Source: Octopus bimaculoides
Taxonomy: Eukaryota
DNA: 32,345 bases
Direction: 5' to 3'
Assembly: GCF_001194135.2 (NCBI RefSeq)
Contig: NC_069009.1
Coordinates: forward strand, 2,095,642 to 2,127,986
The translations under genes were made by a program, and so were the position numbers. Of the stretch, positions 266-32,345 are shown piece by piece. Every line of letters begins with the position of its first letter. Within the stretch, counting starts at the first letter, position 1. Below the pieces are notes generated by a model. The model had not been told where the DNA came from. It saw nothing but the letters and a program-made list of their open reading frames with translations, and made no database searches.

Positions 266-1472
266 ATACTTTGTTAAACATCCTTTCGGAAATCTAATGT
301 TAGAAAGGGAGATAATTTTGGTGGTAATTAACTTTTACGAGGGGAGGTAACTCTCCGACAAATCAATGTTTTCCCTTGTTTTTTTTCTCTTGTCATTTCA
401 TTCACCTTGACATGTTCACACCCACAGACTGTGAGTATATTATATAATTAATTACACACACACACATATCTGTGGTAATTTGCATATGTAAATAGGATTA
501 GGATTGTGCGTATTGTGTTGTATATGCGCGTATAAATTGTAATTTAGAGCCAGTTCCATTCTCTCATCTTTTCAATCCGTGATAAATTTTTCGCTTATTC
601 AGACATATTGCATAACGAGCACATCTACACTTTAATGCCCCACCACAATTTGTTTGTTTTATTTAAATTACATTTCAAAAGGTAAAGATGAAAATTATGC
701 TGATAAAATTTAGGAGAAAGAGAGTCATTTTGGTTTTTCAGTTTTCTCTTTCTAAAAGTCATACTTATGCAATCTTTCGGTATTAGTAGACGGCGTATTC
801 ACCCACACAACGTTGCCTTGCAGCATAGATAAAGAGGCTGGGCTGAAATGATGTCGTCTACTTATACTGAAAAAAGAAATGCCCATCCTTTTTTTTTTCT
901 TTTCAATTTATTGGGTTTTTTTTTTTCCAATCTGTTTATGATCGTTGCATAAACAAAGAAAAGAGGGGAAAAAATCATTTATAACTGTTGTGGTCAAGCT
1001 GCGGGACTTTTTGAATAAACGAAACGTTACCTTGAAATATTTAGTTGTGTGGCTTGCTTCTCAGAAAATATTACCCATGCCTGACCAGTAACATTAGCTT
1101 GATTGTCTATCGTGAACATGAATGAAATCAGGAAGCTCTTAGGAAACTCTCTATTCTGCTGTTTGCTCAGGAAATTACAAATCAAATGTATTAGGGCAAG
1201 ACTTCCGCCCGTCCCCCACCAAAAAAACCACCCTGGTGTAGAGCTTTGGCTGCTCTTTCTAGCGAGTCAGATGTCCTTTTATGGGCATCTCTAATGTGTA
1301 TTAAATGTACACTGTATTTTATATATATATATATATATTTATGTGTGTATAAATATATATTTATTCGTTTTCTTTCTCTTTCTCTCCTTACAGTTTCTGT
1401 ATAAAGGATAACTTGACCAGGTAGAGTCCCCAATTTCTTGGACAGACTCTCTTCTTCAACAGCCTGTCCACA

Positions 1473-1550
1473 ATGGCGGAAAAGGCTACACTCGCTTACC
1501 TACAAGGGGCCACTCTCAAGACCTTAGGCGATGACCCTAAGGAGTTTGGG
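1473..1550 (+). CDS. PRXL2A: PRXL2A/SelU coding exon 1 (exon begins at the 1463 acceptor)
   Basis: Acceptor tcttcttcaacag ends at 1462; ATG at 1473; donor gtgagt at 1551; 26 codons. Confidence 0.88.
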
Positions 1551-1690: not shown

Positions 1691-2309
1691 TATATGTCTG
1701 TGTGTGTGTATGTATATGTATGTATATATGTATGTGTATATGTATATATGTGTATATATGTATGTGTATGTATGTATGTATATATGTGTATATATGTATA
1801 TATATATGTATGTGTATATATGTATATATATATGTATGTGTATATGTATATATGTGTATATATGTATGTATATATGTGTATATATGTATGTATATATATG
1901 TATGTATGTATATATATGTATGTATGTCGTCCCGTCTGAGCAAGGATATGTATGTGTGTGTTTGTTTGTTTGTGGCTTGTATATCTGGAGTGTTTCTCAA
2001 ATTTGTTTTTTGTTTTCACAGGCTGGTGAACTCTGGAAGAATAACGGAGCTATCATCATGGTGGTCCGTCGTCCAGGATGATCCATGTGCAGAGAGGTAA
2101 ACACTTCTATCATTTATATATATATATATATATATATCCCATCGTCCTCATCACCACTACTGGAGTGGCTGGCATTAGGAAGGGCATCCAGCCATAGAAA
2201 CCATACCAGAACAGAAAGCGGAACCTGGTACAGTCCATAGCCTTACCAGTTCTGGTCAAACCGTCCAACCCATGCCAGCATGGAAAACGGACATTAAATG
2301 ATGATGACG

Positions 2310-2378
<69 letters not shown>

Positions 2379-5300
2379 TGGGTGGCTGTGTGCTAAATAG
2401 CTTGCTTACCAACCACATAGTTCTGGGTTCAGTCCCACTGCATGGCACCTTGGGCAAGTGTCTTCTACTATAGGCTCAGGCCGACCAAAGCCTTGTGAGT
2501 GGATTTGGTAGACGGAAACTGAAAGAAGCCCGTCGTATATGTGTGTATATATATAGATGTGTGTGTTTGTGTTTGTCCCCATAGCATTGTTTGACAACCG
2601 ATGCTGGTGTGTTTACGTCCCCGTAACTTGACGGTTTGGCAAAAAGAGACCGATAAAATAAGTACTAGGCTTATAAAGAATAAGTCCTGGGGTCGATTAT
2701 GATGATGATGCTGATGATGATGTTATTGATGTTAATACACATGCTGGTCTTCTCTTTTGTTTTTCAGGAAGCGCAAGCGCTGTCCTCTCTGGTGCCTTAC
2801 TTTGATGAACATGGCTTTAACCTTTATGCCGTTGTACACGAATTGTTGGGCACCGAAGAATTCAAATCTTTTTTTTCCGGGGAATTATTTTTGGACGTTG
2901 AAGTAAGTATATATATACCCGCCTCTTCTACCTGTCCTAATTGCTGTTTCTTGTAAACTTGTATGTTGGTTCAGACAAACATGGTCACAAAGACACAGGT
3001 ACACGTAGGCATATATATGTAGAAGACTGGAGAGAAATGAAGGCAGTTCGACAACTGGCACCCATGCCAACGTCGTCTCCTTCATTGGACACGAAACTCG
3101 GCTTGCGAAGACCTGTTGGAGCAAGCGAAAGCGAAACCATGATGGCACCTGTGCCCAGCGTCGCCTTCCTGGCTCTTGCAAAGACGTTCGAGTGAGATCG
3201 TTGCCAGTGCCACTGGACTGGCTCCTGTGCAAGTGGCACCATTTTGTACATACACCAGACATCCACCATTTTGTACATATCGTTGTTGTTGGCACTCCGT
3301 CGCTTACGACGTTGAGGGTTCCAGTTGATCCAATCAACGGAACAGCCTGCTCTTGAAATTAACGTGCAAGTGGCTGAGCACTCCACAGACACGTGTACCT
3401 TTAACGTAGTTTTGATGGGATATTCAGCGTGACACAGAGTGTGACAAGNNNNNNNNNNTGGTGGAAGAGTACAGCAGGGTTCGCCACCATCCCCTGCCGG
3501 AGCCTCATGGAGCTTTAGGTGTTTTCGCTCAATAAACACTCACAACGCCCGGTCTGGGAATCAAAACCGCGATCCTATGACCGCGAGTCCCCTGCCCTAA
3601 CCACTGGGCCATTGCGCCTCCACTGTACATACATCACACATCCCCATTTTGCATGTATGCTACACATCCCCTATTTTGTAAGTATGCCATGCATCCACCA
3701 TTTTGTACATGTATGTATATGGATAAGCATAAATGTATATATAACATTTAATCCCTTTTTTCTTTGTAGAAAACATTTTATGGTCCTAAGAAACGATGGG
3801 CATCTTTTGCAGCACTTCTAAACCCTTTAGTATGGATGAATTTATGTAGAGCGAAAAAGAAAGGCGTAAGTGGTAACACATCTGGTGAAGGGAGACTTTT
3901 AGGGGGTAAGTCATCATCTGTCCTGTTTTTTTTTTTTTGTCACTGGTGTGTGGCCATTCTGGGGACACTGCCTTGAAGGGTTCAACTTAAGTGGTTCTCA
4001 AATGATTTTTCACGTCCCACCAGCACAAGTGCCAGTAAGGTGACGCTGGTTATGTATATATATATATAATAATATATATATACTATGATGGGCTCTGTCA
4101 GATTTCCTCTACCAAATCCACTCACAAGGCTTTGGTTGTTCCAAGGTTATAGGTTATATTAGAAGACACTTCCCCAAGGTACCATGATGAGGGACTGAAC
4201 TCAGAACTATGTGGTTGGGAAGCAAACTTGTACCACACAGCCACGCCAAGTTTATTAAACATATTTTGATATATTGTCTTTCATATCCAGTTTCTGTTTT
4301 ATTTATCCTCCTCAGTTACTTTTTTTTTAATTTACAAAGTTGCATTTTTTAATATACAAAGTTGCAGTCCAGCAGTTTTCAGACTTGTTCAGGTAAAACA
4401 TTAGTTTCAAGAGGCATGTTTTGATGGTAAGGGGATTAATTGTGGGACCAGAGGGGGCCCATACTGAGGATGGTTTGTCATGGATTGTGTCCAGTGGGAT
4501 TGGGTATAGCCATTTCCTTCAATCTGGAATGACAAAAATTGGCAGGTCAGCTTATTAGATTTGTAGCGAGACTAATTTCATAATTGCATGTTCAGACTTG
4601 AGTACTCCCAGAAGGGCTCCATACGCATGTCTCTAATGATTGGTTATGTGACCAGTCATGTGACACTGAAATATTTTGTTGAATCAGGCATTTTGATTGA
4701 TCTAGTTTTACATAGAATACTTAGCTTGTTTCCAATCATGTTGCACAATAGACCACCAGATGCAACAAATTAAAAATGCTCGTCTGAGCCCCTTTTTGTT
4801 AATAAATAGCATGAGGTTTTTCATTTTAATTCAGAGAGGAGAGTTTGTTTTCAGGAAGCTATGTCGCATTTTTCTTTGTTCCTGTTGAACAACTGAGTTG
4901 AAAAACCAACTGTGTATGATTTGAATAATGAACTTCCAAAATAGTTTTCACATCCTGACTGCATTCTGCAAACTAGTCATCTATGACAATCAGTATTTAA
5001 CAGGAAGTATTCAAAGTGCTATTATAGCCATCTCCTTCAATCTGAAATAGCAAAAATTGGTAGGACAGCTTATTAGATGTTGTTGTTGTTGTTGGCACTC
5101 CGTCGCTTACGACGTCGAGGGTTCCAGTTGATCCGATCAACGGAACAGCCTGCTCATGAAATCAACGTGCAAGTGGCTGAGCACTCCACAGACACGTGTA
5201 CCCTTAACGTAGTTCTCGGGGATATTCAGCGTGACACAGTGTGACAAGGCTGACCCTTTGAAATACAGGCACAACAGAAACAGGAAGTAAGAGTGAGAGA

Positions 5301-7999
5301 AAGTTGTGGTGAAAGAGTACAGCAGGGTTCACCACCATCCACTGCCGGAGCCTCGTGGAGCTTTAGGTGTTTTCGCTCAATAAACACTCACAACGCCCGG
5401 TCTGGGAATCGAAACTGCGATCCTATGACCGCGAGTCCGCTGCCCTAACCACTGGGCCATTGCACCTCCACTCAGAGAGCTACTACCTCTGTTAGTAACG
5501 AAGGGACTTCCTTTGGAATGAAAGGCAGATTATATGATGCTCCTGCATGGAAAATAGACAATAAATGATAATGATGATATACTGAAATTACTATAACCTA
5601 TATAGCAATATTTATACAGCAATTTATATAGCAATATAGCAAGGGATTACTATAATTATATAAGATCCATTACTTAGGTGACCAAGTCTGTAGTGGGGAG
5701 GGGTTCAGTCCAAAAGCATAGCTGGTAGTATAAGGATAGGCTGGGTGAAGTTCAGAGAGCTACTACCTCTGATAGTAATGAAGGGACTTCCTTTGGAATA
5801 AGAGGCAGATTATACGATGCCCCTGCATGGAAAATAGACAATAAATGATGATGATGACGATGACGATGATAATATACTAAAATTACTATAATTTAAGACA
5901 GGTAGAAGTTCCTTTCCTAAAAGAGTCTCAAAACTTCTGGAATGCACCTTGTATGCTTAATTTTACCTGCAACTTCTGTTTTGCACATTTGTCTTCAACC
6001 TTTTCCTTTTTCTTGTTTTACAGGAGTTTTCGTAATTGGTCCAGGAGAAGCGGGGATTTTGCTGGATCATCGAGAAAACAAGTTTGGAGACCACGTCAAG
6101 GCGGAGCTGATCAAGTCGGTCGTGGCACAGTTCAGGGGAACGGACAAAGACAAAGGCGGAGAAGGTACGGCAGTTGTGGAGAGCGCCGTTGATGAACCGA
6201 AGAGTGCATTTGGGGGCTTCACTGACATCACCCGTGGCGTGACCGACTCGCTGCAAGATACGGCATCTGGTGCAACGAGTCTGGCCAGCCAAGTGCAACA
6301 GAACGTCACGAGCGGACTGGATGACGCAAAGCAGAGTGCTACTGACGAGCTTGACCGTGCCAAGTCAGGTGTGACAGAAACTGGAAGTCAAATGCAGCAG
6401 GACATAGAGAGCAAGGTGGCTGATGGGAAAAAGAGCATAGCAAGCGGAATTGCCGATGCACGGAAATCAGCAACAGATAGCTACAGCGGCGTGACTAGTT
6501 CAATTGGTGATGCACAGAAAAGTGCAGTGTCGGGATTCAATGAAGCGAAACAGTCTGCAGTAAAAGGATTTGGAGATGTTCGTGGCGGAGTCACAAGTAC
6601 CATCAGTGGCGCACAAGAAAGTGCAGTGTCCGGATTCAATGAAGCGAAACAGTCTGCGACTCAAGGAATTGGCGATATTCGCAGTGGCGTAACCAGCACC
6701 ATTTCTGATACACAGAAAAGTGCAGTCACAGGATTCAATGAAGCGAGGCAATCTGCTGTCAAGGGAGTCGGAGATATCCGCAGCGGCGTGACCAGCACCA
6801 TCTCTGATACACAGAAAAGTGCAGTCACTGGATTCAATGAAGCAAAACAATCTGCTGTCAAAGGAATTGGCGATATCCGCAGCGGCGTGACCAGCACTGT
6901 CTCTGATGCACAGAAAAGCGCAGTCACAGGATTCGATGAAGCGAAACAGTCTGCTGTCAAAGGAGTCGGAGACATTCGCAGTGGCGTGACCAGCACTGTC
7001 TCTGATGCACAGAAAAGCGCAGTCACGGGATTCAACGAAGCAAAGCAATCTGCGGTGCAAGGAGCCAGTGATATTCGCCGAGGCGTGAGCAGCACTGTGA
7101 GTGATGCACAAAAGAGTGCAACATCTGCGTTCAATGAAGCGAAACAGTCGGCTGTCCAAGGAGCCGGAGATATTCGCAACAGCGTGACAGGTGCGATTAG
7201 CGATACACAAAAAAGTGCAGTGTCTGGATTCGATGAAGCGAAGCAGTCGGCCGTGCAAGGGTACAGTGACATTCGTAGCGGAATAAGCAGCACCGCCAGT
7301 GATGCACAGAAAAGTGCAGTCACAGGATTCAATGAGGCGCGAAAATCTGCAACTGACAGCTTTGGTGAAATTCGCGGTGGCGTGACTAGCTCGGTAAGCA
7401 GCGCGCAGAAGAATGTAGTATCTGGAATCAATGATGCCAAACAAACTGCATCCCAGGGCCTTGGTGACATGCAGCAAAAGGTGACAGCCTCTGTTGCTGA
7501 TGTGCAACGGAGCGGAGCATCGAGTTTTTCGTCAGCCAAGCAAGGCCTCGCCTCAGGTGTCGCCGGTGCAAAGGGCAGCTTGAACACTGCCAAGGACGAT
7601 GCGTCGAACACTTTCTACGACGCCAAGCAGAGTCTCGACGACAGCATGTCGTCAACCAAACAGGCCGTCTGCGAGAGTGCAAATGCCGTTCGTTCGGACG
7701 CAGACGCTGCAAAGAACCAAGTCGCAGGCAGCATCCAGTCGGCGAAGGACCTCAGTTCAGAAACTGCAGACAAGGTGAAACAGAGCACGACCACAGAGGC
7801 AGCCGGTTTCAAGGGCACCCTAGACAAGTTCACCAAGGACCTGCCTGGCAAGGAAGATTTCCAAGAGGCCCTAGACATGGCTAAAGAGGTCGGCAAAGAG
7901 GAAATAAAAGATGTCATTGAACAAGTGAAAACCACAGCTGGGACCGCGGTATCGGATTATACGACGCAGTTCACCGATAAGCTTGGTTCCTGGAGTTAA
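1473..7999 (+). CDS. PRXL2A: Peroxiredoxin-like 2A / selenoprotein U (FAM213A family), spliced CDS join(1473-1550,2022-2096,2768-2902,3770-3905,6024-7999) = 2400 nt, 799 aa with Sec at residue 46 and a long C-terminal repeat tail
   Basis: All four introns are GT-AG with polypyrimidine tracts and compatible phases (0,0,0,1). The joined peptide [26 protein letters not shown]|[25 protein letters not shown]|EAQALSSL...GELFLDVE|KTFYGPKKR...GEGRLLG|[25 protein letters not shown] matches recalled PRXL2A motifs (KAALEYL..LKTL, ELW..NGAVIMAVRRPGCxxCREEA, FYGP, GEG..LGGVFVVG, GILLEHREKEFGDKV) colinearly. Confidence 0.93.
1556..1965. repeat. Compound (TA)/(CA)/(TATG) microsatellite in intron 1
   Basis: Direct reading; it explains the YI/HT/CV-rich ORFs here. 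Confidence 0.97.
2022..2096 (+). CDS. PRXL2A: PRXL2A/SelU coding exon 2 with in-frame TGA (Sec) at 2079-2081
   Basis: Acceptor ttttcacag; [27 protein letters not shown]; donor gtaaac at 2097. Confidence 0.92.
2145..2310 (+). mobile_element. Family B retroposon 3' end (..catggaaaacggacattaaatgatgatg tail)
   Basis: Shared with 17330-17450, 18045-18372, 18962-19170 and 31118-31262. Confidence 0.75.
2380..2698 (+). mobile_element. tRNA-derived SINE family C (ggagtggctgtgtggtaag..ccttgggcaagtgtctt..)
   Basis: Copies or fragments also at 4086-4245(-), 11330-11523, 19516-19995, 20606-20825, 23010-23620, 26245-26920 and 32137-32296. Confidence 0.8.
2768..2902 (+). CDS. PRXL2A: PRXL2A/SelU coding exon 3
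   Basis: Acceptor tttttcag; [45 protein letters not shown]; donor gtaagt at 2903. Confidence 0.93.
3282..3622 (-). mobile_element. tRNA-derived SINE family A (Arg-like head), interrupting a ~26-bp minisatellite
   Basis: Minus-strand head GGAGGCGCAATGGCCCAGTGGTTAGGG..ACTCGCGG with A/B-box-like motifs and a (CAA)n tail; multiple copies in this window. Confidence 0.85.
3770..3905 (+). CDS. PRXL2A: PRXL2A/SelU coding exon 4 (missed by the ORF track)
   Basis: Acceptor tttctttgtag; [45 protein letters not shown]+G; donor gtaagt at 3906; phase 1. Confidence 0.92.
5079..5471 (-). mobile_element. SINE family A, near full length
   Basis: Same head, body and tail as the other family A copies. Confidence 0.88.
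5472..5892 (+). repeat. ~130-bp imperfect direct duplication in intron 4 (~5472-5600 and ~5752-5892)
   Basis: cagagagctactacctctg..gaagggacttcctttggaat..catggaaaatagacaataaatgat occurs twice. Confidence 0.85.
6024..7999 (+). CDS. PRXL2A: PRXL2A/SelU terminal exon: end of the Trx-fold domain plus ~615-aa repeat-rich extension
   Basis: Acceptor cttgttttacag ends at 6023; phase 1 completes Gly; open frame continues to TAA at 7997-7999. Confidence 0.88.
6509..7498 (+). repeat. Ten in-frame 99-bp (33-aa) coding tandem repeats, consensus [33 protein letters not shown]
   Basis: Units counted in the translation; exact 99-nt period without frameshifts; degenerate units on both flanks. Confidence 0.95.
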
Positions 8000-8047
8000 A
8001 TAGACCGTGACGATGGCAATAACGACATTGCCAGCGGAAGCTGTTGA
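7997..8047 (+). promoter_or_regulatory. Candidate compact GUGA-type SECIS element
   Basis: GUGA at 8007-8010; helix 8011-8020/8027-8036 (9 of 10 pairs); apical loop begins with AA (8021-8022); GA at 8037-8038; weak lower helix 7997-8003/8041-8047. Helix and loop are shorter than canonical. Confidence 0.4.
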
Positions 8048-8293
8048 TTGGATTATATCACCATCGTCACCATCAGCAGCAAACACACTAACACACACAT
8101 GCAGATGAATATACAAGCACATACACACATGCATACATACACATAAATATAAACGTGTATATATNNNNNNNNNNNNNNNNNNNNNNNNNNNNNNNNNNNN
8201 NNNNNNNNNNNNNNNNNNNNNNNNNNNNNNNNNNNNNNNNNNNNNNNNNNNNNNNNNNNNNNNNNNNNNNNNNNNNNNNNNNNNNNNNNNNNN

Positions 8294-8331
<38 letters not shown>

Positions 8332-9103
8332 GTTTGTATTTATGTATACGTGTATAAACACGCACACACACATATATATACACTTGCATATACACACGTC
8401 TAAATACACACATAGGTACATTGACCCAAAGATATACGTGTAAACACAAAACAAACACATATACTTATAAATGAATACATAAATACATACATATACACAC
8501 ACACGTTTCCAGGAATCAAAAATTATTTATAAAAAATAATGTTGAACAAAATCCATAAAAAAAGAATGGAGAGAAAAAGTATCTAACAACCACCAGAAAT
8601 GTGTAAAATTTAAATGAATGAAGACCACGACGAAGAAGAAGAAGAAGAAGAAAGAGGGGGGAACTCCCCACTCTCCCCTCGTTAGCTCCCCGCTAAAGAA
8701 AAAGAAATTGAACAGTGAAAAAAAAAAGAGAGAAAGAGAGAAAGCAAGACCAGATGCTATAATCTTAACTAATTGGATTCGTTCAAGTTAAGTTACCTCC
8801 CTTTGCCGTCGTCCTCCCTACCTCCCCCTCGCCTTGCCAACCACCACCACCACCACCACCATTNNNNNNNNNNNNNNNNNNNNNNNNNNNNNNNNNNNNN
8901 NNNNNNNNNNNNNNNNNNNNNNNNNNNNNNNNNNNNNNNNNNNNNNNNNNNNNNNNNNNNNNNNNNNNNNNNNNNNNNNNNNNNNNNNNNNNNNNNNNNN
9001 NNNNNNNNNNNNNNNNNNNNNNNATGTTGTTAACGGCGTTGGCTGGACTGTAACTATGACAACAGCAACAACTAGTTGTGTAAGTTTGCTGGGTTAGGCC
9101 GTG

Positions 9104-9142
<39 letters not shown>

Positions 9143-9202
9143 CATGAGTAACGTGTATATGCGTGTGTAGTGTGTTTATGTATGCCTGTGTTTATATGCG
9201 TG

Positions 9203-9250
<48 letters not shown>

Positions 9251-9336
9251 TATATAAGCAAATGTGAAGATATATACTTGTATGCATGCATCTACAAGTG
9301 CGTGTGTATATATCAAAGCATATATATCTGTGTACG

Positions 9337-9380
<44 letters not shown>

Positions 9381-9435
9381 CATGCACATACATACACAGC
9401 CCATATATAATACACATACTACATATATATATGTA

Positions 9436-9473
<38 letters not shown>

Positions 9474-12468
9474 GCAAACATGTACGTGCACTCATAAATA
9501 CACACACACACACACACAGGGATCACACGTCCCAGTTGGTGCCCCAGGCATTTTTCATTATTTCAACTACTTTCCTTAAATACTGGAAACAGAAAGGAAT
9601 CGGCGAGACGAGGAGGAGGAGGAGGAAGAGGAAGACCAAGAAGAAGAAGAGCAAGAGGGATTATCTGTCTGTGCCTCTGTGTATATCCATCTCTCTCTCT
9701 CTCTCTTTATGTGTCCCATGTCTCCGTTAATCTCTGTCCTGTTTATTACGAACGTTTCGTGTCTGTCCGCAATAATCTGCTGTAACGCCGTATACGTGTC
9801 GTTGAGGTGCATTCGAGGCCCCCCACCCGGTTTTTTTTTTCTCGCTCTCTCTCTGGACCAATGTTACCAGTGTGACATCAACCCAACTTTTCCCCACTGG
9901 GTCCACACGCGCGTACGTTCGGTCGGAGTACATTCTGGCCTCACCTGCTTTACATTACCTACCTGCCTAAACTGCCTTCCTGCATGCCTTTTCGTCTGTC
10001 TCTCCGTCTCATAGTGTCCGTCCATCTACGTTTTGTAAGTATGTGAGCGAACGCGTGGCATGCTTGCCAATGTGCCCATCCTTTGGAGCATGCAATTTTC
10101 CAAGAACAAACAGTAAGAAAGTTTAAAGAAAACAAAAATTACAAAAAAAAATTAAAAAATAATAATAATTTCCATGCATTGGTGTTGTAGTTTGGTGCAG
10201 TTTTGTGGTTATTGAGTAGTGGTAGTGATAATGATTATTATTATTGTTATTATTATTATTATCAATGGTTATTGTTATTCCATGCGAGGTCTCACTGTCG
10301 AATGACGGCGCCAGACTAAAAAGTCACTGNNNNNNNNNNNNNNNNNNNNNNNNNNNNNNNNNNNNNNNNNNNNNNNNNNNNNNNNNNNNNNNNNNNNNNN
10401 NNNNNNNNNNNNNNNNNNNNNNNNNNNNNNNNNNNNNNNNNNNNNNNNNNNNNNNNNNNNNNNNNNNNNNNNNNNNNNNNNNNNNNNNNNNNNNNNNNNN
10501 NNNNNNNNNNNNNNNNNNNNNNNNNNNNNNNNNNNNNNNNNNNNNNNNNNNNNNNNNNNNNNNNNNNNNNNNNNNNNNNNNNNNNNNNNNNNNNNNNNNN
10601 NNNNNNNNNNNNNNNNNNNNNNNNNNNNNNNNNNNNNNNNNNNNNNNNNNNNNNNNNNNNNNNNNNNNNNNNNNNNNNNNNNNNNNNNNNNNNNNNNNNN
10701 NNNNNNNNNNNNNNNNNNNNNNNNNNNNNNNNNNNNNNNNNNNNNNNNNNNNNNNNNNNNNNNNNNNNNNNNNNNNNNNNNNNNNNNNNNNNNNNNNNNN
10801 NNNNNNNNNNNNNNNNNNNNNNNNNNNNNNNNNNNNNNNNNNNNNNNNNNNNNNNNNNNNNNNNNNNNNNNNNNNNNNNNNNNNNNNNNNNNNNNNNNNN
10901 NNNNNNNNNNNNNNNNNNNNNNNNNNNNNNNNNNNNNNNNNNNNNNNNNNNNNNNNNNNNNNNNNNNNNNNNNNNNNNNNNNNNNNNNNNNNNNNNNNNN
11001 NNNNNNNNNNNNNNNNNNNNNNNNNNNNNNNNNNNNNNNNNNNNNNNNNNNNNNNNNNNNNNNNNNNNNNNNNNNNNNNNNNNNNNNNNNNNNNNNNNNN
11101 NNNNNNNNNNNNNNNNNNNNNNNNNNNNNNNNNNNNNNNNNNNNNNNNNNNNNNNNNNNNNNNNNNNNNNNNNNNNNNNNNNNNNNNNNNNNNNNNNNNN
11201 NNNNNNNNNNNNNNNNNNNNNNNNNNNNNNNNNNNNNNNNNNNNNNNNNNNNNNNNNNNNNNNNNNNNNNNNNNNNNNNNNNNNNNNNNNNNNNNNNNNN
11301 NNNNNNNTATATATATATATATATATGTTTGTGTCTCTGTCCCCGCCACCATCGCTTGACAACCGATGTTGGTGTGTTTATGTCCCCTTAACTTAGCGGT
11401 TTCGGCAAAACAGACCGATAGAATAAGTACTGGGCTTACAAAGAACAAGTCCTGGGGTCGATTTGCTCGACTAAAAGCGGTGCTCCAGCATGGCCACAGT
11501 AAAATAACTGAAACAAGTAAAAANNNNNNNNNNNNNNNNNNNNNNNNNNNNNNNNNNNNNNNNNNNNNNNNNNNNNNNNNNNNNNNNNNNNNNNNNNNNN
11601 NNNNNNNNNNNNNNNNNNNNNNNNNNNNNNNNNNNNNNNNNNNNNNNNNNNNNNNNNNNNNNNNNNNNNNNNNNNNNNNNNNNNNNNNNNNNNNNNNNNN
11701 NNNNNNNNNNNNNNNNNNNNNNNNNNNNNNNNNNNNNNNNNNNNNNNNNNNNNNNNNNNNNNNNNNNNNNNNNNNNNNNNNNNNNNNNNNNNNNNNNNNN
11801 NNNNNNNNNNNNNNNNNNNNNNNNNNNNNNNNNNNNNNNNNNNNNNNNNNNNNNNNNNNNNNNNNNNNNNNNNNNNNNNNNNNNNNNNNNNNNNNNNNNN
11901 NNNNNNNNNNNNNNNNNNNNNNNNNNNNNNNNNNNNNNNNNNNNNNNNNNNNNNNNNNNNNNNNNNNNNNNNNNNNNNNNNNNNNNNNNNNNNNNNNNNN
12001 NNNNNNNNNNNNNNNNNNNNNNNNNNNNNNNNNNNNNNNNNNNNNNNNNNNNNNNNNNNNNNNNNNNNNNNNNNNNNNNNNNNNNNNNNNNNNNNNNNNN
12101 NNNNNNNNNNNNNNNNNNNNNNNNNNNNNNNNNNNNNNNNNNNNNNNNNNNNNNNNNNNNNNNNNNNNNNNNNNNNNNNNNNNNNNNNNNNNNNNNNNNN
12201 NNNNNNNNNNNNNNNNNNNNNNNNNNNNNNNNNNNNNNNNNNNNNNNNNNNNNNNNNNNNNNNNNNNNNNNNNNNNNNNNNNNNNNNNNNNNNNNNNNNN
12301 NNNNNNNNNNNNNNNNNNNNNNNNNNNNNNNNNNNNNNNNNNNNNNNNNNNNNNNNNNNNNNNNNNNNNNNNNNNNNNNNNNNNNNNNNNNNNNNNNNNN
12401 NNNNNNNNNNNNNNNNNNNNNNNNNNNNNNNNNNNNNNNNNNNNNNNNNNNNNNNNNNNNNNNNNNNN

Positions 12469-12699
12469 GGGATATTCAGCGTGACACAGAGTGTGACAAG
12501 GCTGACTCTTTGAATTACAGACACAACAGAAACAGGAAGTAAGAGTGAGAGAAAGTTGTGGTGAAAGAGTACAGCAGGGTTCGCCACCATCCCCTGCCGG
12601 AGCCTCGTGGAGCTTTAGGTATTTTCGCTCAAGAAACACTCACAACGCCCGGTCTGGGAATCGAAACCGCGAGTCCGCTGCCCTAACCACTGGGCCTCC
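12469..12699 (-). mobile_element. SINE family A, partial (runs into a gap)
   Basis: Near-identical to the corresponding part of the 5079-5471 copy. Confidence 0.82.
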
Positions 12700-13756
12700 A
12701 CCATTATAGAGTAACTAGCAGCTAAACCCGGTCGGTTTAGCATTCGCCTTGTTTGGGCACGCTTACGTTAAAAAACAATTTTAGAATGACTTTTTTCTGT
12801 CAAAACGCTAAAAATAACTGACCGACAAAAGAAAAACCAACCAAATCAAAAAATAAACCCACATAGTAAGTGAAAAAAGATGCAAAACAACAGAAATATA
12901 AAAAAAATAAAACAAAAATTAAAAGAAATAAAAAAATAAGTCAGATATCCTTTAAATTTTCAAAGGTCAAAAAACAACAAAAAAATGAATAACCGGAAAA
13001 CATGAAATACCTCAACCTCAATGCGAAATATTACACAAAATTTAAAAACCAAAAAGAAAAAAAAAAAACCCATCTGAAACTGGAAAAAAAATAACTGAGA
13101 TACTACAAAGAATGACTTCACAAAAAATCCCACTTCCACTGCACGCACACACGAACACATTCACATACCCCCTTTTACATACATACACATATTCACAGAG
13201 TTGAAATGCTGTTTGATTTATTTTTTCAGCGTACAATTTTCATCATCCCACTACCAAGTCTGACATCACCCCTTCCTTCCTTATTCATAAACACAAGAGT
13301 ATTATTATAGTAGATTATCTCGGTAACCATGGGAGCCATGAAAAAAATACAAAGCCTTGCATCAGCTCCAGATCATTCTACACATCTGTGTAATTTTTCG
13401 CGCAATTCCACCCAGCCGTTTGACCATGAATCCCAAGACACGAAAGAATCGCCCATAGATAAAGAAACTGGAATTGATCTAATCAAAGTATAGTAATTAA
13501 GACGATTAGTATTAATGAGATTAAAAGATATAATGGATCCTTTTGGTTTGACGGGCAATTATCTGTTCTATAATACAAAATATACAAGTATACGAAGTTT
13601 GAAAGTGTTTCGGTACCAAAAACACTACATAAAACATTAATGAAAAATGTTTCCCGTCAAACCAAAAGGATCCTAAATATTTACTTACAATATATTTACA
13701 CGAGTTCAACTGCCTTACAGACGAAGCTGAATATAGGTTCCACAATATGAACATTG

Positions 13757-14368
13757 TGTGTTGTTTGTTGGCACTCCGTCGCTTATGACGACGAGGGTTC
13801 CAGTTGATCCGATCAACGGAACAGCCTACTCGTGAAATTAACGTGCAAGTGGCTGAGCACTCCACACACACGTGTACCCTTAATGTAGTTCTCGGGAATA
13901 TTCAGCGTGACACAGAGTGTGACAAGGCTGACCCTTTGAAATACAGGCACAACGGAAACAGGAAGTAAGAGTGAGAGAAAGTTGTGGTGAAAGAGTACAG
14001 CAGGGTTCGCCACCATCCCCTGCCGGAGCCTCGTGGAGCATTAGGTGTTTTCGCTCAATAAACACAACACCCGGTCTGGGAATCGAAACCGCGAGTCCGC
14101 TGCCCTAACCACTGGGCCATTGCGCCTCCACAGAGTGTGACAAGGCTGACCCTTTCAATTACAGGTACAACAGAAACGGGAAGTAAGAGTGGGAGGAAGT
14201 TGTGGTGAAAGAGTACAGCAGGGTTCGCTACCATCCCCTGCCGAAGCCTCGTGGAGCATTAGGTGTTTTCGCTCAATAAACACTCACAACGCCCGGTCTG
14301 GGAATCGAAACCGCGATCCTATGACCGCGAGTCCGCTGCCCTAAGCACTAGGCCGTTGCGACTCCACA
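13757..14368 (-). mobile_element. SINE family A full copy plus adjacent tandem partial copy
   Basis: Copy at ~13757-14130 is followed directly by a second head-containing ~240-bp segment joined at ccacagag. Confidence 0.85.
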
Positions 14369-14734
14369 CTATGAACTGAAAAGACCAAATTTCTCAAGCC
14401 AGATAAATTGACATAAATAAACTCTTTCGAATGTCAAGTGAAGAATTTGTTACGAATAGTTAGATTTGCTCAGGATTACTTGACAATTCTGTGACCATTA
14501 TAACAAGGAAAGCGAATATGTTACATTCCATGTTTTAGATGAAGCTGATAGACTGAGGAGCTTCGAACGACATAGTTGATAGGAGAAACTGAATTAACTT
14601 TCGATTTGAAGACGTGTTCTAACCTTGGGTAGATGTTGTTACTCGAACACCAACACTACCTGGGTCTGTCCATGCACAACTAACTTGCGCTCCAGTGAAA
14701 AAAAAATGTTTTTATCGAGTCTTGGTGTTACAAG

Positions 14735-15065
14735 GTGTTTTTGTTGGTCCCACACATAATAATCCCGGGGGTTGCAGTCTGGGGAGTTAGGCGGTTAGAT
14801 GTTAAGGGGTGATGTGGTCGCAGAAATTGTCTGACTGCCATGACATGGTTTTCCTGCTTCTATGTCCTGTTGCCAGACATAGGGGTCTTCCAGCAGCCCC
14901 ACTCTTGAGCCAGGGCAGCTCTACCTCCTCCAGACACTTGATATAGGCTTCTATGTTGTGTGTGAGGCCGTGTGGGAAGATGAATGGAGGCATAACGTCA
15001 CCATCACTAGTGATCACTCCAAACACCATGATGTTGACTGGATGTTTGATTTTTATCACTCTCGG
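14735..15065 (-). mobile_element. Tc1/mariner superfamily (maT/DD37D-like) transposase remnant
   Basis: KHPVNIMVFGVITSDGDVMPPFIFPHG...CLEEVELPW...DNFCDHITPNI*PPNSPDCNPRDYYVW; has a stop and deletions. Confidence 0.8.
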
Positions 15066-15568
15066 TACATGTCATCAGATTGACACCCAAACACTCTGCA
15101 ATGTTCGTATTGGAACTTCCAGAGTGAATGATTTTATTATTATCCATGAAGGACGAACACAGAGAGGACAGTACAATATGATCTGGGGGNNNNNNNNNNN
15201 NNNNNNNNNNNNNNNNNNNNNNNNNNNNNNNNNNNNNNNNNNNNNNNNNNNNNNNNNNNNGGGGGGGGGGTCATATAACACGAAATGAGAACTTCCAGAG
15301 CGAATGCCAAGCAATACAGCATGTTGTTTCCAATTTTATGGCAGAGTGAATTGCGTCACGGTGCTGTGTTTCTCACAGATGGTGCCCAACCGACCCAACT
15401 ATATTGTGTAGTCGACAAAATCGAAAACAAAATTTGCGCATGCATGAAATTAAAAATATGAAATGGCAACAATAAGCAGAGTATAATATCATAAACATCA
15501 AAATAATATTAACAGCAATAACATAATAACATAAACAACGACGTAAGATACGAAGCAGAAACGAGGAT

Positions 15569-19539: not shown

Positions 19540-19849
19540 TGTCGAAATAGGCCCCGAGTTGTCACAGCAGGCTTGCCTGTGGACAGCAAAAAAGTTGCTC
19601 CGGGAGGTGTAGGAGGCTTAAGTGCCTATCCATTGATTGTTAAATTGTGTTATTTTAATTTTGATTTAATATTGATTTGATTGTATGTAAATTGAATTGT
19701 TAGAGAACAGTGATTTCGAGGTGTTGTCACTCGGCGGGCGTCAAATACCCCTCTCATTTATAACATTCACATTCCATTAATGTAAATGTCCAACCCACAT
19801 TGCTTCTTTGCTTCTATGTAAGGCCTTCATGGCCAATTTGAATGAAATA
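19540..19849 (+). mobile_element. 5'-truncated non-LTR retrotransposon 3' end inserted in a SINE head
   Basis: Flanked by an 8-bp duplication aagtagct (19532-19539 / 19850-19857); short ORF end followed by a UTR ending in aataa(a); the SINE sequence resumes after it. Confidence 0.6.
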
Positions 19850-21619
19850 AAGTAGCTGGCTTACCAACCACATAGTTCTGGGTTCAATCCCACTGTGTGG
19901 CACCTTGGGCAAGTGTCTTCTACTATAGCCTTGGGCTGATCAAAGCCTTGTAAGTGGATTTGGTAGACGGAAACTGAAACAAGCCTGTCGTACATGTGTG
20001 TGTCATCATCATCATCATCATCATCGTTTAATGTCCGCTTTCCNNNNNNNNNNNNNNNNNNNNNNNNNNNNNNNNNNNNNNNNNNNNNNNNNNNNNNNNN
20101 NNNNNNNNNNNNNNNNNNNNNNNNNNNNNNNNNNNNNNNNNNNNNNNNNNNNNNNNNNNNNNNNNNNNNNNNNNNNNNNNNNNNNNNNNNNNNNNNNNNN
20201 NNNNNNNNNNNNNNNNNNNNNNNNNNNNNNNNNNNNNNNNNNNNNNNNNNNNNNNNNNNNNNNNNNNNNNNNNNNNNNNNNNNNNNNNNNNNNNNNNNNN
20301 NNNNNNNNNNNNNNNNNNNNNNNNNNNNNNNNNNNNNNNNNNNNNNNNNNNNNNNNNNNNNNNNNNNNNNNNNNNNNNNNNNNNNNNNNNNNNNNNNNNN
20401 NNNNNNNNNNNNNNNNNNNNNNNNNNNNNNNNNNNNNNNNNNNNNNNNNNNNNNNNNNNNNNNNNNNNNNNNNNNNNNNNNNNNNNNNNNNNNNNNNNNN
20501 NNNNNNNNNNNNNNNNNNNNNNNNNNNNNNNNNNNNNNNNNNNNNNNNNNNNNNNNNNNNNNNNNNNNNNNNNNNNNNNNNNNNNNNNNNNNNNNNNNNN
20601 NNNNNTATATATATATATATATGTGTGTGTCTGTGTTTGTCCCCCCAACATCACTTGACAACCGATGCTAGTGTGTTTACGTCCCCCGTAACTTAGTGGT
20701 TCGGCAAAAAAGAGACCGATACAATAAGTACTAGGCTTACAAAGAATAAACCCTGGGGTCGATTTGCTCGACTAAAGGCGGTGCTCCAGCATGGCCGCAG
20801 TCAAAAGACTGAAACAAGTAAAAGAGAGAGAGTAAGAGTAATGCAATCATTCTATGATTCCAGTCCCAAGTTGAATTCCAATTTGTCTGATCTCAATCTG
20901 AAATTAATGAATGTCATTTATCTCCCCCTCCATCTCTGACATCATCTGACAAATTGCCAAACCAAGATTGGGGGAATCAGCCAAACTTTTTTACCTGCTA
21001 GAAATAGCAGCCCAAATGCTTTAAAATCAGATCCCAGTACTGGATGTACAAGAACCAAATGAAGGGCAGATCTTCAATCCCAGGATCATCCTAATTCCAA
21101 AAAGATATATGTCTATGCAGAATAGGCTGAGATATAGGAGGTCCTGGACAGACAGAATTTTGCTTTAATTACTATAGATATAAGAGGTTAAGAAGTTGGT
21201 TGTTAAAAATGTATGTATTGTCCTTCTGTTTTCCATGATAAATTTCTTCAAAAATTTTCTTATTTTTCTAATATATATATATATATACCGAAGTTCAGAA
21301 ATAGCAGCTATTTCTGAACTTCGGTATGTGGTGAAGCAACTGTTGCTGATCCCTTAATTATGTTTATAAATTTATAAGAACTTTTAAATAAGTTCTTCAC
21401 CGATAATGGTGTTTACATACCGAAGGGCTTGGTAAAAATTATTAATTCTTAATTTATTAATAAATTAATAATCCTTTACCCTTTTATTTATAATAATATA
21501 TATATATATATATATTGATAGGAAGGACAACAAAAGAAAGAAAGAGACCTCGATATTATGTATATATATATATATATATATATATCTGTAAAAATATGTG
21601 ACACTTATTCAGTAGCCAT

Positions 21620-23332: not shown

Positions 23333-23962
23333 CGTCGCATATATATGTGTGTCTGTCTCACACCACCACTTGACAACCAGTGATGGGGTGTTTACGTCCC
23401 TGTAACTTTAGCAGTTCAGGTTTAAAAAGCAGTACTGGGGTTGATTAGTTCAAATAAAATCCCCCCAAGGCAGTACCCTGGCATGGCCAGTGTCATGACT
23501 GAATCAAGTAAAAGATAAAAGAAATAGGGACAGGTGTGGCTGTGTGGCAAGTAGTTTATTTCTCAACTGCACGGTTCTGGTTTCAGTCCCATTATGTGGC
23601 ATCTTGGGTAAATGTCTTCTATTAAATTCCAGTTCTGAAACTCTCAGCAAATGCAATCATATGAACAAAAATTTCTTTTAGCGAAGTGGAAGGTATCACC
23701 CTCTCTGGTGGATTATTCTACAATGAGAAAATAAAAAGGGCGTCAGAGGGGCCATGCATACCCTGCGTGCACAAAAGGATAAAATGAAATTCAATTTGAT
23801 AAATATATTCTCAGACGAATTCAGATTTCAACAAAATGACATCAAGAGTTATTTCCCCTGCTTATCAGTTATGCACATATATATCTATAATTAGAAATAT
23901 AATATTTCTAAATCTCCCAGAGAGATTTAAGCAGTAGTGGAGCGATAAAGTTGTAGTATATT

Positions 23963-24263: not shown

Positions 24264-24819
24264 NNNNNNNNNNNNNNNNNNNNNNNNNNNNNNNNNNNNN
24301 NNNNNNNNNNNNNNNNNNNNNNNNNNNNNNNNNNNNNNNNNNNNNNNNNNNNNNNNNNNNNNNNNNNNNNNNNNNNNNNNNNNNNNNNNNNNNNNNNNNN
24401 NNNNNNNNNNNNNNNNNNNNNNNNNNNNNNNNNNNNNNNNNNNNNNNNNNNNNNNNNNNNNNNNNNNNNNNNNNNNNNNNNNNNNNNNNNNNNNNNNNNN
24501 NNNNNNNNNNNNNNNNNNNNNNNNNNNNNNNNNNNNNNNNNNNNNNNNNNNNNNNNNNNNNNNNNNNNNNNNNNNNNNNNNNNNNNNNNNNNNNNNNNNN
24601 NNNNNNNNNNNNNNNNNNNNNNNNNNNNNNNNNNNNNNNNNNNNNNNNNNNNNNNNNNNNNNNNNNNNNNNNNNNNNNNNNNNATGCAGCACAGAATTTT
24701 GTCTGTGAACACGTCGCGGTCACAAAGCGACGAAAATATTTTGACAGATTAAATTTAAATGTTGAAGTTTTTGTGTGTTATTGTAAATGGCTTATAAACA
24801 CCTTCCACGCTGCAATTGT

Positions 24820-24983
24820 TTATATATACATATATATATATATATACATATATATATTTATACATATATAGATATACATATATACATATACATATATACA
24901 TATACATATATATATATATACATATACATATATACATATACATATATATATATACATATACATATATACATATACATATACAT

Positions 24984-25070
<87 letters not shown>

Positions 25071-25077
25071 TATATAC

Positions 25078-25108
<31 letters not shown>
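24820..25108. repeat. (TA)/(TACA) microsatellite
   Basis: Direct reading of the sequence. Confidence 0.97.
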
Positions 25109-25912
25109 ACAAAAAGAAAGAAAAAACATTTTGATTCACCTGTCTGCCATTTTTGAAGATAATCAAACCAAAATAATGAGTTTGAGCCCCTCGCCCAATG
25201 TGTATTTCTGCCAAATTTGGTGAAAATCTGTTCAGCCGTTTTCCAGTAATTTTGCAAACACACAGACAAAGACGACCTATTGTATAATACCCTGCTTTTG
25301 CTTACGCGTGCAAGGTAACTAGCTTAATGATGGCTTTATCGTCAAAGGGGGCATAACTCTAATTTTCTTGCCTTTTTATTCACCCTTCCACTTTTTCCAT
25401 CAACCTTTTTCTCATTTCGTGGTCCTAATTTGCAAATTGAATAGGCCATGTATTCAGAGCCCGAGATTGCTTGGAGACAGGTTATAAAAACCTGTCTAAA
25501 CCTGTGTCTCCAATGTCTTTATATTGTGTACATTAAATGAGGTACATATCGCTGCTATTACGTTAAACTGTATGTCCAAATGCGGTTTTTTTTTCCAATA
25601 TTTATTTTTGCTTGCAATAGCCGGGTCTTTTGGTCAAACTATCGTATCTCCAGCTGCTTCAGATGCCAAGATATCAAAAATTATCGAAGAGGTAGTACAA
25701 CGATTTTGCTGAGGGATGGTGAAACTAATTTTTGGTTTTCTGGAAAAAAAAAGCAACGTTTTGGACATTTTTGCATAATAGCAGCAATATATATAATCAT
25801 TAATTGCTTACTTGTTTCAGCAATTAGACTGTGGCCATGCTGGGGCACTACCTTGAAGAATTTTAGTTGAATGAATACACAACATTTTTTTTTAAAGCCT
25901 GCTACTTATTCT

Positions 25913-27415: not shown

Positions 27416-28339
27416 TTACAAGAACATGTCTTCGAAGTAGGACTCGAATTCTTCGTTCCTACTCTTCGCAACTTCCACTTTAGCCGGGCCCTGCCACACA
27501 GAAGAGGAACCACAACCGGAATNNNNNNNNNNNNNNNNNNNNNNNNNNNNNNNNNNNNNNNNNNNNNNNNNNNNNNNNNNNNNNNNNNNNNNNNNNNNNN
27601 NNNNNNNNNNNNNNNNNNNNNNNNNNNNNNNNNNNNNNNNNNNNNNNNNNNNNNNNNNNNNNNNNNNNNNNNNNNNNNNNNNNNNNNNNNNNNNNNNNNN
27701 NNNNNNNNNNNNNNNNNNNNNNNNNNNNNNNNNNNNNNNNNNNNNNNNNNNNNNNNNNNNNNNNNNNNNNNNNNNNNNNNNNNNNNNNNNNNNNNNNNNN
27801 NNNNNNNNNNNNNNNNNNNNNNNNNNNNNNNNNNNNNNNNNNNNNNNNNNNNNNNNNNNNNNNNNNNNNNNNNNNNNNNNNNNNNNNNNNNNNNNNNNNN
27901 NNNNNNNNNNNNNNNNNNNNNNNNNNNNNNNNNNNNNNNNNNNNNNNNNNNNNNNNNNNNNNNNNNNNNAGTAGGTCAAGTAATCGTTGATGAACTTCTT
28001 GTGCCTCGAATAGGCGTCCATGCTGACGATCTTGAAGCGGTGGAGACGAGATAACTCGGCAGAGCGCTCATTGTACAAATGCTGTTTCTTCTGGCCGAAA
28101 CCGTCTTCGCGCCTCTGCAGTTTCCCTTCCAAGTGGCGGCTGGACTTCGGGCGTTTCCGCCGTCGTTTCTTCGCCTTCGTAGACGGACGCGAAAGCGAAG
28201 CGCCCGCTTCGTCCGAGTCGCGCCTATCGTCGTCCGCTGCTGACCGTCGTGTGTTTCCGCTAATCTCCGGATCACTGTCGAAATCGGAATCGTAATAGCT
28301 CCCGCGATGAACTTTCACAAAGTTTGTCTTTTCCGACAT
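27416..28339 (-). CDS. FRA10AC1: FRA10AC1 homolog; middle hidden by gap 27523-27969
   Basis: The N-terminal part has YDSDFDSD and RFKIVSMDAYSRHKKFINDYLTY (recalled human: GYDSDFSD, RFHLIAMDAYQRHTKFVNDYILY). The C-terminus VWQGPAKVEVAKSRNEEFESYFEDMFL* matches recalled human LWKGP...KSQEEEFDEYFQDLFL*. Confidence 0.92.
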   Translation of the reverse strand: MSEKTNFVKVHRGSYYDSDFDSDPEISGNTRRSAADDDRRDSDEAGASLSRPSTKAKKRRRKRPKSSRHLEGKLQRREDGFGQKKQHLYNERSAELSRLHRFKIVSMDAYSRHKKFINDYLTYXXXXXXXXXXXXXXXXXXXXXXXXXXXXXXXXXXXXXXXXXXXXXXXXXXXXXXXXXXXXXXXXXXXXXXXXXXXXXXXXXXXXXXXXXXXXXXXXXXXXXXXXXXXXXXXXXXXXXXXXXXXXXXXXXXXXXXXXXXXXXXXXXXXXXXSGCGSSSVWQGPAKVEVAKSRNEEFESYFEDMFL

Positions 28340-29364: not shown

Positions 29365-29687
29365 TGGAGGCGCAATCCAGTGGTTAGGGCAGCAGACTCG
29401 CGGTCATAGGATCGCGCCACGAGGCTCGGGCAGGGGATGGTGGCGAACCCTGCTGTACTCTTTCACCACCACTTTCTCTCACTCTTACTTCCTGTTTCTG
29501 TTGTGCCTGTAATTCAAAGGGTCAGCCTTGTCACACTCTGTGTCACGCTGAATATCCCCGAGAACTTCGTTAAGGGTACACGTGTCTGTGGAGTGCTCAG
29601 CCACTTGCACGTTAATTTCACGAGCAGGCTGTTCTGTTGATCGGATCAACTGGAACCCTCGACGTCGTAAGCGACGGAGTACCAACA
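29365..29687 (+). mobile_element. SINE family A with internal deletion of the B-box region
   Basis: The head jumps from gatcgcg to ccacgaggctc; the remainder matches family A. Confidence 0.82.
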
Positions 29688-31699: not shown

Positions 31700-32136
31700 G
31701 AGAGGAAGAGAGATAGAAAGATAGATAGACAGAGATTATAAAGATATATACAGATATGTATATGTAGATAGATTGATACATAAGGATAAATATATATACG
31801 TGTGTGTGTATGTGTGATATTTATTTCTCTCTATGCATGGAGCCCTTTTGGGAGTACTCAAGTCTAAACATGCAATTATGAAATTAGTTTCACTACAAAT
31901 CTAATAAGCTGACCTGCCAATTTTTGTTATTCCAGATTGAAGGAAATGGCTGTACCAGTACTTTGAACATGTTCTACTAAATAGTGATTGTCACAGTTGA
32001 CTAGTTTACAGAATTCAAATGGAATGCGAAGACAATTTGGAAACTTACTATGCGATAAAGTTTTGTGTTAAACCAAGCAAAAACGTTACGGATATTTTAA
32101 AGAATGCTCCACGCTTTAAAATATGCTCCAGGCGCA

Positions 32137-32296
32137 GGAGTGGCTGTGTGGTAAGTAGCTTGCTTACCAACCACATGGTTCTGGGTTCAGTCTCACTGCG
32201 TGGTACCTTGGGCAAGTGTCTTCTTCTATAACCTCGGGCTGACCAAAGCTTTGTGAGTGGATTTGGTAGACGGAAACTGAAAGAAGCCCGTCGTAT
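32137..32296 (+). mobile_element. SINE family C head and core
   Basis: Near-identical to the 2380 and 19516 copies. Confidence 0.8.
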
Positions 32297-32345
32297 ATAT
32301 ATATATATATATATGAAACCAGATGGCTACACCAGGCTCCACTCT

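Follow-up and report, generated by a model that had tools for sequence, protein, structure and literature searches.

A predicted selenoprotein U1 gene of Octopus bimaculoides with a hairpin beside its UGA codon and a long amphipathic repeat tail

The stretch of DNA analyzed here (hereafter, the window) comprises 32,345 nucleotides (nt) of the Octopus bimaculoides genome (assembly GCF_001194135.2, NC_069009.1:2,095,642–2,127,986, forward strand), and all positions are counted from its first letter. Judging from its sequence, this region very probably carries a functional gene for selenoprotein U1 (SelU1; SELENOU1/PRXL2A), wherein UGA codon 46 would be decoded as selenocysteine (Sec) to yield the redox motif U46-x-x-C49. 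A Sec codon by itself is ordinary, and is indeed expected for an invertebrate SelU1. The unusual part is the architecture of the predicted protein, wherein the enzyme domain runs into a long tail of tandem repeats. The window includes 12 gaps that together account for 4458 N, along with plentiful TA/TG microsatellites and several families of interspersed repeats.

The gene model is located on the forward strand and includes five exons, extending from ATG 1473 to TAA 7997–7999, whose splice sites were set by reading the sequence. The coding sequence is 2400 nt in length (799 codons), all introns are of the GT-AG type and carry a polypyrimidine tract, and the splice phases are intact. The sole in-frame stop codon ahead of the terminal TAA is the TGA of codon 46. 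Exon 2 opens with GCT GGT GAA CTC TGG AAG AAT AAC GGA GCT ATC ATC ATG GTG, and the sequence surrounding this codon then reads GTC CGT CGT CCA GGA TGA TCC ATG TGC AGA GAG, followed by gtaaac at the start of the intron. The coding features are as follows.

1473–1550, forward strand: coding part of exon 1 (M1–G26); ATG 1473 is the first in-frame ATG, and an in-frame TAG lies upstream at 1422–1424.
2022–2096, forward strand: exon 2 (A27–E51), which holds the redox motif.
2079–2081, forward strand: in-frame TGA, codon 46, the putative Sec codon.
2079–2090, forward strand: predicted U-S-M-C redox motif (TGA 2079–2081, TCC 2082–2084, ATG 2085–2087, TGC 2088–2090), aligned to the CxxC of cysteine (Cys) homologs.
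2768–2902, forward strand: exon 3 (E52–E96).
3770–3905, forward strand: exon 4 (K97–G141 and the first base of G142), which ends in phase 1.
6024–7999, forward strand: exon 5, which encodes the end of the AhpC-TSA_2 domain and continues uninterrupted into the repeat tail, ending with TAA 7997–7999.

Five collinear coding blocks were recognized by an initial tblastn search with a human PRXL2A query, which served only as a lead and was superseded by database proteins. The boundaries of exon 3 are identical in related genomic contigs (P0038 and P0039), and no second, Cys-encoding copy of exon 2 is present within the window. An earlier note on this DNA had numbered the motif U46-S-M-C49, with an ATG at codon 48, and had stated that a stop at the TGA would leave a peptide of 45 amino acids. 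The numbering is correct when ATG 1473 is taken as the start, and the peptide length is likewise correct in the assembled model. The same note had described homology that continues over four more exons with intact phases; the phases and splice sites are intact as described, but the exons that follow number three (exons 3, 4, and 5). We also observe that microsatellites keep the stretch from 1425 to 2078, including the whole of intron 1, free of stop codons in one frame.

Domain and motif matches indicate that the predicted protein probably belongs to the SelU1 family. Residues 56 to 160 match the Pfam AhpC-TSA_2 domain (PF13911) with a score of 53.7 bits (cut-off 27), and the motif RRPG-[U/C]-x-x-C-R-E-E is in register with both Sec and Cys family members. 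When residues 1 to 195 were used as a query, with U replaced by C, a search of 5.8 billion proteins returned 39 matches. Those that are named carry the designation PRXL2A or FAM213A, or in one record (P0035) PRXL2 with no letter, and they derive from gastropods, frogs, fish, a scorpion, amphioxus, and a priapulid (46–57% identity). None of the 39 is named PRXL2B or PRXL2C. The closest solved structure is that of a prostamide/prostaglandin F synthase (PRXL2B; PDB 9us9), which matches residues 29 to 174 with an E value of 6e-20. PRXL2B (SelU3) has a CxxC at the same position as the motif in the window but, unlike the window protein, it is a tail-less Cys form that belongs to a paralogous subfamily.

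Sec-containing forms of SelU1 (C10orf58, now PRXL2A) are found in invertebrates, fish, birds, and reptiles, whereas therian mammals and frogs are among the groups wherein Sec was independently converted to Cys (PMC3473315; PMC13134290). The statement in the earlier note that SelU carries Sec in fish and is a Cys homolog in mammals agrees with these reports. The window protein shares with the Sec-form SelU1 proteins of fish, birds, and invertebrates (PRXL2A, C10orf58, FAM213A, or PAMM) the AhpC-TSA_2 thioredoxin-like domain, the RRPG-U-x-x-C-R-E-E motif, and a UGA at the first redox position, and it is 46–59% identical to named PRXL2A proteins and to relatives without a name. The window gene model differs from other SelU1 genes in that it is without an N-terminal hydrophobic anchor, the first in-frame ATG being just before the domain, and in that it includes a C-terminal amphipathic repeat extension of ~620 residues. 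Among the homologs retrieved, this extension is otherwise present only in a transcript contig from a related species (L001), wherein the first in-frame ATG is likewise just before the domain. A further difference from Sec-form SelU1 genes known elsewhere is that the selenocysteine insertion sequence (SECIS) of the window gene was not located.

The fact that the TGA falls precisely at the first Cys of the PRXL2A motif RRPGCxxC, as the earlier note had proposed, is borne out both by protein alignment with Cys forms (RRPGCxxCREEA) and by the TGA codons of ortholog transcripts. The alignment of this TGA with the first Cys of CxxC is not chance. The earlier note had suggested that orthologs be examined at codon 46 for TGA versus TGC or TGT. 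On doing so, we found RRPG-TGA-x-x-TGC/TGT in frame in all eight of the Sec-type ortholog contigs fetched (L001–L006, L010, and L011), whereas the four Cys forms (L007, L008, L009, and L012) carry TGC or TGT at the equivalent codon.

A comparison of the window with L001 gives a measure of the selection acting on either side of the TGA. L001 is a 1225-nt transcript contig from sequencing run SRR7369733 that begins with a SMART template-switch oligo, and its PRXL2A domain is ~80% identical to that of the window protein. By the Nei–Gojobori method, the region before the TGA exhibits proportions of synonymous (pS) and nonsynonymous (pN) differences of 0.64 and 0.10, respectively, with an omega of 0.07. 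The 90 codons after the TGA yield a pS of 0.75, a pN of 0.12, and an omega of ~0.03. Across the regions compared, pS ranges from 0.64 to 0.93 and thus is saturated, and the TGA is unchanged (CGT CGT CCA GGA TGA TCC ATG TGC in the window versus CGC AGA CCC GGA TGA TCC ATG TGT in L001). Because the TGA has been retained while synonymous sites became saturated, neither an assembly error nor a recent nonsense mutation can account for it, and the strong purifying selection after the TGA shows that the downstream sequence is translated in the TGA frame. The proposal of the earlier note that the TGA encodes Sec and does not mark a pseudogene is therefore supported by its conservation in L001, by the omega of ~0.03, by the seven additional orthologs with the same TGA, three of which carry a SECIS match in the 3′ UTR, and by the literature cited above.

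The messenger RNA also includes a predicted stem-loop adjacent to the UGA. When mRNAs are aligned from the UGA, the consensus structure begins 8 nt past UGA46 and forms a 13-bp stem with one bulge. The window version reads CAGAGAGGAAGCG [CAAG] CGCU-G-UCCUCUCUG. Intron 2 splits this hairpin in the genome, such that the structure is possible only in the spliced mRNA. Its parts are located as follows.

2090–2096, forward strand: first part of the hairpin 5′ arm, CAGAGAG; the arm resumes at 2768–2773 after splicing.
2768–2791, forward strand: remainder of the hairpin, with 5′ arm GAAGCG (2768–2773), loop CAAG (2774–2777), and 3′ arm CGCT-G-TCCTCTCTG (2778–2791).

The predicted free energy of the window hairpin is −20.8 kcal/mol, compared with −8.3 ± 3.0 kcal/mol for 500 synonymous recodings, none of which reached as low a value. 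Recodings as stable as the natural sequence were likewise absent (0 of 500) for L002, L004, and L010, whereas 1–2 of 500 were obtained for L001 and L003 and ~5% for L005 and L006. The Ser codons TCC or TCT are fixed in the hairpin-bearing Sec forms, whereas at residues that are identical or similar, the Cys forms L008 and L009 have AGT and ACT. Paired cells across the eight Sec forms amount to 90.4%, compared with 85.7% for shuffles and 36–57% after sliding of the 3′ partner. Three stem pairs change on both sides, including a C-G to U-A change at the base of the stem between the window and L001; the stem is mostly invariant and covariation is limited.

Hairpins adjacent to UGA codons are known in SEPN1, SELT, and SPS2 (PMC1440920; PMC4561486; PMC12936836). 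The window hairpin is similar to these Sec redefinition elements (SREs) of SEPN1/SELENON, SELT, and SPS2 in that it is a coding-sequence stem-loop positioned less than 10 nt past a Sec UGA and is conserved beyond what protein coding needs. It is unlike them in that it is located in SelU1 and is split by an intron. Given this resemblance to an SRE, a role in recoding is predicted. The distribution of the hairpin is suggestive of a link to Sec that is not strict: it is present in seven of the eight Sec forms, including the fish-like L010, but is missing from the Sec form L011; of the four Cys forms, L007 retains it, L009 retains part of it, and L008 and L012 have lost it. For a poorly understood protein family, this hairpin offers a candidate recoding element that is kept via synonymous sites and that, in this gene, is assembled by splicing.

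The tail that distinguishes this protein is ~620 residues in length (6149–7996) and is fused to the enzyme domain within exon 5. Its most regular portion is as follows.

6476–7474, forward strand: ~10 tandem 99-nt repeats, each encoding 33 residues (three 11-mers) and together spanning residues ~296–625; repeat finder family D7.

The repeat finder assigns the 99-nt period of this family to positions 6476 to 7468, and Tandem Repeats Finder reports the same period with 8.4 copies at 6508–7339. About ten 33-residue units are in perfect register, and they are flanked on both sides by more degenerate sequence that is also based on 11-mers. Residue self-matching within the tail is 0.42 at a lag of 33 and 0.19 at a lag of 11, and the hydrophobic moment reaches its maximum at 98.2 degrees, which is the angle of a 3-11 helix. 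The composition is mainly S, A, G, T, V, D, K, and Q, with few bulky hydrophobic residues. AlphaFold run without an alignment, and used for helix content only, depicts the tail chiefly as extended helices, and the confidence of the model is low (mean pLDDT 50.9). The Pfam family Apolipoprotein A1/A4/E (PF01442) scores 88.5 bits, which is under its cut-off of 90, and Pfam yields no perilipin match to the tail.

Perilipin-4, apolipoproteins A-I, A-IV, and E, and group-3 LEA proteins are like the window tail in having 33-residue units composed of three 11-mers that form a 3-11 amphipathic helix, and in a composition rich in S, A, G, T, and V with few bulky hydrophobic residues. They differ from it in that they exhibit no sequence homology with the tail, and in that the window repeats are joined to an enzyme of redox type. 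By analogy, the tail most likely would bind lipid surfaces in a reversible manner, an assignment that is less certain. In L001, the enzyme domain also runs into homologous 11-mer-based repeats, which are 39% identical to those of the window, with gaps of 11 and 22 residues in the alignment of the two species. The fact that the fusion is present in L001 at saturated synonymous divergence indicates that the enzyme-tail architecture is conserved.

The tail may stand in for the N-terminal hydrophobic anchor of other PRXL2A proteins, whose N-termini include a hydrophobic segment. No in-frame ATG is present upstream of MAEKAT in either the window (1425–1472) or L001 (27–164), and L001 appears to be 5′-complete, with a short out-of-frame upstream open reading frame (ORF), MRLLLVVSKT. 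We infer that the anchor is absent in the lineage of O. bimaculoides and L001, although an upstream exon beyond the window may encode one. The upstream frame of L001 is open and faintly like the PRXL2A hydrophobic anchor, and may be a relic.

Several observations weigh against the interpretation of this locus as a functional SelU1 gene whose tail binds lipid. The Rfam model SECIS_1 (gathering score 35) identifies no element in the whole window, either at the gathering score or at E ≤ 10, and none at E ≤ 10 when 7990–10330 or 12469–15189 is examined. A scan of the window for the pattern ATGA...AA...GA returns weak candidates only, and a covariance model prepared from SelU1 SECIS cores (R1), run with filters off and up to the gap edge, finds nothing credible in the window. 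L001, which is the sole related contig that spans the junction between domain and tail, lacks 2 nt and its frame is broken. An exhaustive phmmer search of 1.84 billion representatives reveals no real homologs of the tail, and the best matches (≤29% identity) are phage tape-measure and other helical-repeat proteins. A word-index search with the tail likewise returns no homolog and one tape-measure protein, the C-terminal 158 residues retrieve nothing in that search, and an exact look-up of the exon-5 ORF finds no record. The lipid-binding role is proposed from periodicity and composition only. Finally, Sec incorporation at UGA46 in O. bimaculoides is a prediction from the sequence, as are the N-terminus of the protein and the 3′ end of its mRNA.

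The break in L001 can be traced to positions 565–590, where one G is missing from each of two G runs encoding the invariant GEGRLLGG, leaving the tail out of frame as assembled. Because the protein after the break is conserved in the frame of the window, with 15 synonymous versus 5 nonsynonymous differences over 24 codons, we take the break to be an artifact, and the missing G residues are probably a read or assembly error. This break is the sole sign of the pseudogene-type decay in orthologs that the earlier note had wished to see examined; selection after the TGA is otherwise strong.

The absence of a recognizable SECIS constitutes weak evidence, because half of the 3′ sequence is N and because the sensitivity of Rfam for these elements is limited. 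SECIS_1 matches are present in the 3′ untranslated regions (UTRs) of L004 (28.6 bits), L006 (26.4 bits), and L010 (28.5 bits), all of which are under the gathering score. The fact that Rfam missed the element of L005, which is two bases off that of L006, reveals this limit on sensitivity for SelU1. No SECIS match was obtained in L002 or L003. The pattern scan recovered the known elements of L004, L005, and L006. In the window, no AATAAA follows the stop codon before 12852, and ATTAAA occurs just once, at 10151; the 3′ UTR therefore probably passes through the assembly gaps listed here together with one candidate that adjoins them.

8165–8293, 8864–9023, 10330–11307, and 11524–12468 (overall span 8165–12468), no strand: four assembly gaps, contributing 2212 N to the 4469 nt that follow the stop codon.
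10301–10329, forward strand: candidate 5′ half of a SECIS, A-TGA-C-GGCGCCAGACT-AAAAA-GTCACTG, which abuts the 978-N gap at 10330–11307.

The candidate at 10301–10329 has an ATGA core with a run of A residues 12 nt later (11 nt between ATGAC and AAAAA), which is the register observed in the L004 and L006 elements, and its sequence occurs once in the window. Such half patterns are present at a frequency of 0.5 per kb, and the chance of finding one beside one of the four gaps is ~0.1. This sequence may be a SECIS that is cut off by the gap, and we regard it as a lead and not as a finding.

Other candidates were set aside. A weak SECIS-like hairpin 8 nt past the stop codon (8007–8038, forward strand; GUGA ... 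AA ... GGAA) is rejected: its helix II is short (9 bp), its loop spans 6 nt, it is unseen by Rfam, and the minimum-energy structure instead prefers a long-range helix between GTGACGATGG and CCATCGTCAC. These two segments constitute a perfect 10-nt inverted repeat (8007–8016 and 8060–8069) that is the dominant element of the structure predicted for the proximal 3′ UTR. The region at 12786–12873 has an A/U-rich stem and an unstructured apical region of ~60 nt. A match of model R1 at 13779–13809 is spurious, as it sits within a family of interspersed repeats. Dozens of sub-threshold Rfam microRNA matches (mir-297, mir-3149, and mir-466) are artifacts of the microsatellites listed here.

1550–2000, 8090–8420, 9100–9510, and 24750–25140: TA/TG/CA microsatellites.

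Among alternatives to Sec insertion, the one that survives best is readthrough of UGA46 without Sec, wherein a near-cognate tRNA would decode the UGA with the aid of the hairpin and without a SECIS, as proposed for hymenopteran SPS1-UGA. The assembled sequence yields no SECIS, a strong hairpin adjoins UGA46, and SRE-type hairpins are known to give some Sec-independent readthrough when a SECIS is lacking (PMC4561486). However, we consider this explanation improbable. Since N accounts for half of the sequence past the stop codon, the absence of a SECIS is not established, and the orthologs L004, L006, and L010 carry a SECIS along with the same hairpin. Furthermore, the residue in question is the catalytic residue of UxxC/CxxC, where redox activity would be lost with Trp or Arg.

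That the TGA is a true stop, with the locus being a pseudogene or a nonsense allele or having been misassembled, is less probable still. The draft assembly is rich in gaps and the L001 frame is broken further downstream, but L001 keeps the TGA at saturated synonymous divergence with an omega of 0.03 after it, the same TGA is present in seven further ortholog contigs, no splice site or phase is disrupted, and an exon of 1976 nt remains open. Equally improbable is termination at UGA46 followed by a restart at Met48, which would yield as the main product a Sec-less protein retaining Cys49 and the tail. The earlier note had raised this possibility because an ATG is located two codons past the TGA, and database ORF callers have yielded ‘MCREEA...’ proteins from such transcripts, but the idea finds no support: the residue at +2 is Met only in the window, L001, and L003 and is Leu in L002, L004, L005/L006, L010, and L011; the ‘M’ of database protein P0013 represents a TTG that was taken for a start codon; purifying selection acts in the same frame on the 45 codons ahead of the TGA (omega 0.07), which fits one continuous protein; and the product would be without the catalytic Sec.

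If the locus is a SelU1 gene as we propose, Sec-tRNA would be delivered through a SECIS in the unassembled portion of the 3′ UTR, and the hairpin formed in the spliced mRNA would probably act in the manner of an SRE to help recode UGA46. Failure to recode would yield the 45-residue peptide. The last exon junction follows UGA46 at a distance of 286 nt, and therefore an unrecoded mRNA probably would be degraded by nonsense-mediated decay. The 753 residues after codon 46, which comprise the remainder of the thioredoxin fold together with the ~620-residue tail, would then depend on selenium supply. By analogy with the repeat proteins named above, the enzyme would be tethered to a very long but weak amphipathic helix and would sit at lipid surfaces. 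The combination of a thiol/selenol oxidoreductase with such a helix suggests that the SelU1 family may act at lipid surfaces. More tentatively, and with considerable doubt, SelU1 of this lineage might be viewed as a lipid-surface selenoenzyme that has lost its anchor and gained a giant perilipin-4-like helix, with production of the entire protein gated by Sec decoding at codon 46 and aided by an SRE-type hairpin that extends from this lineage to fish and was previously unrecognized in SelU1.

The practical value of recognizing the Sec codon is a corrected annotation. The expectation of the earlier note that pipelines would mis-annotate such a gene is realized among public SelU1 ortholog models, which either skip the motif or read the TGA as Trp. 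Four proteins (P0004, P0005, P0024, and P0031) include ‘RRPGW..C’, wherein the TGA is rendered as Trp, and the models of Bulinus (P0020), Branchiostoma (P0028), Amia (P0026), and Atractosteus (P0029) skip part or all of VRRPGUxxCRE. Many ORFs derived from transcripts start at ‘MCREEA’ or ‘LCREEA’ and thus were called right after the upstream stop. Skipped motifs, Trp calls, and late starts are classic signs of mishandled Sec genes, and the mis-annotation of SelU1 is systematic. No protein from the window locus itself was found among the 5.8 billion proteins searched.

Elsewhere in the window, a single ORF on the minus strand (27416–28339) extends across an N gap and seems to be intronless. Its product starts with MSEKTNFVKVHRGSYYDSDFDSD...MDAYSRHKKFINDYLTY and ends with ...EEFESYFEDMFL, and is reminiscent of FRA10AC1; its first 123 residues yield no Pfam match. 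In addition, at least two families of interspersed repeats that resemble short interspersed elements are present in the SelU1 introns and downstream of the gene, and the copies identified are as follows.

2372–2555, 19827–20010, 23526–23620, and 32130–32313: interspersed repeats, set 1.
3286–3623, 5089–5471, 12486–12723, 13765–14367, and 29414–29687: interspersed repeats, set 2.

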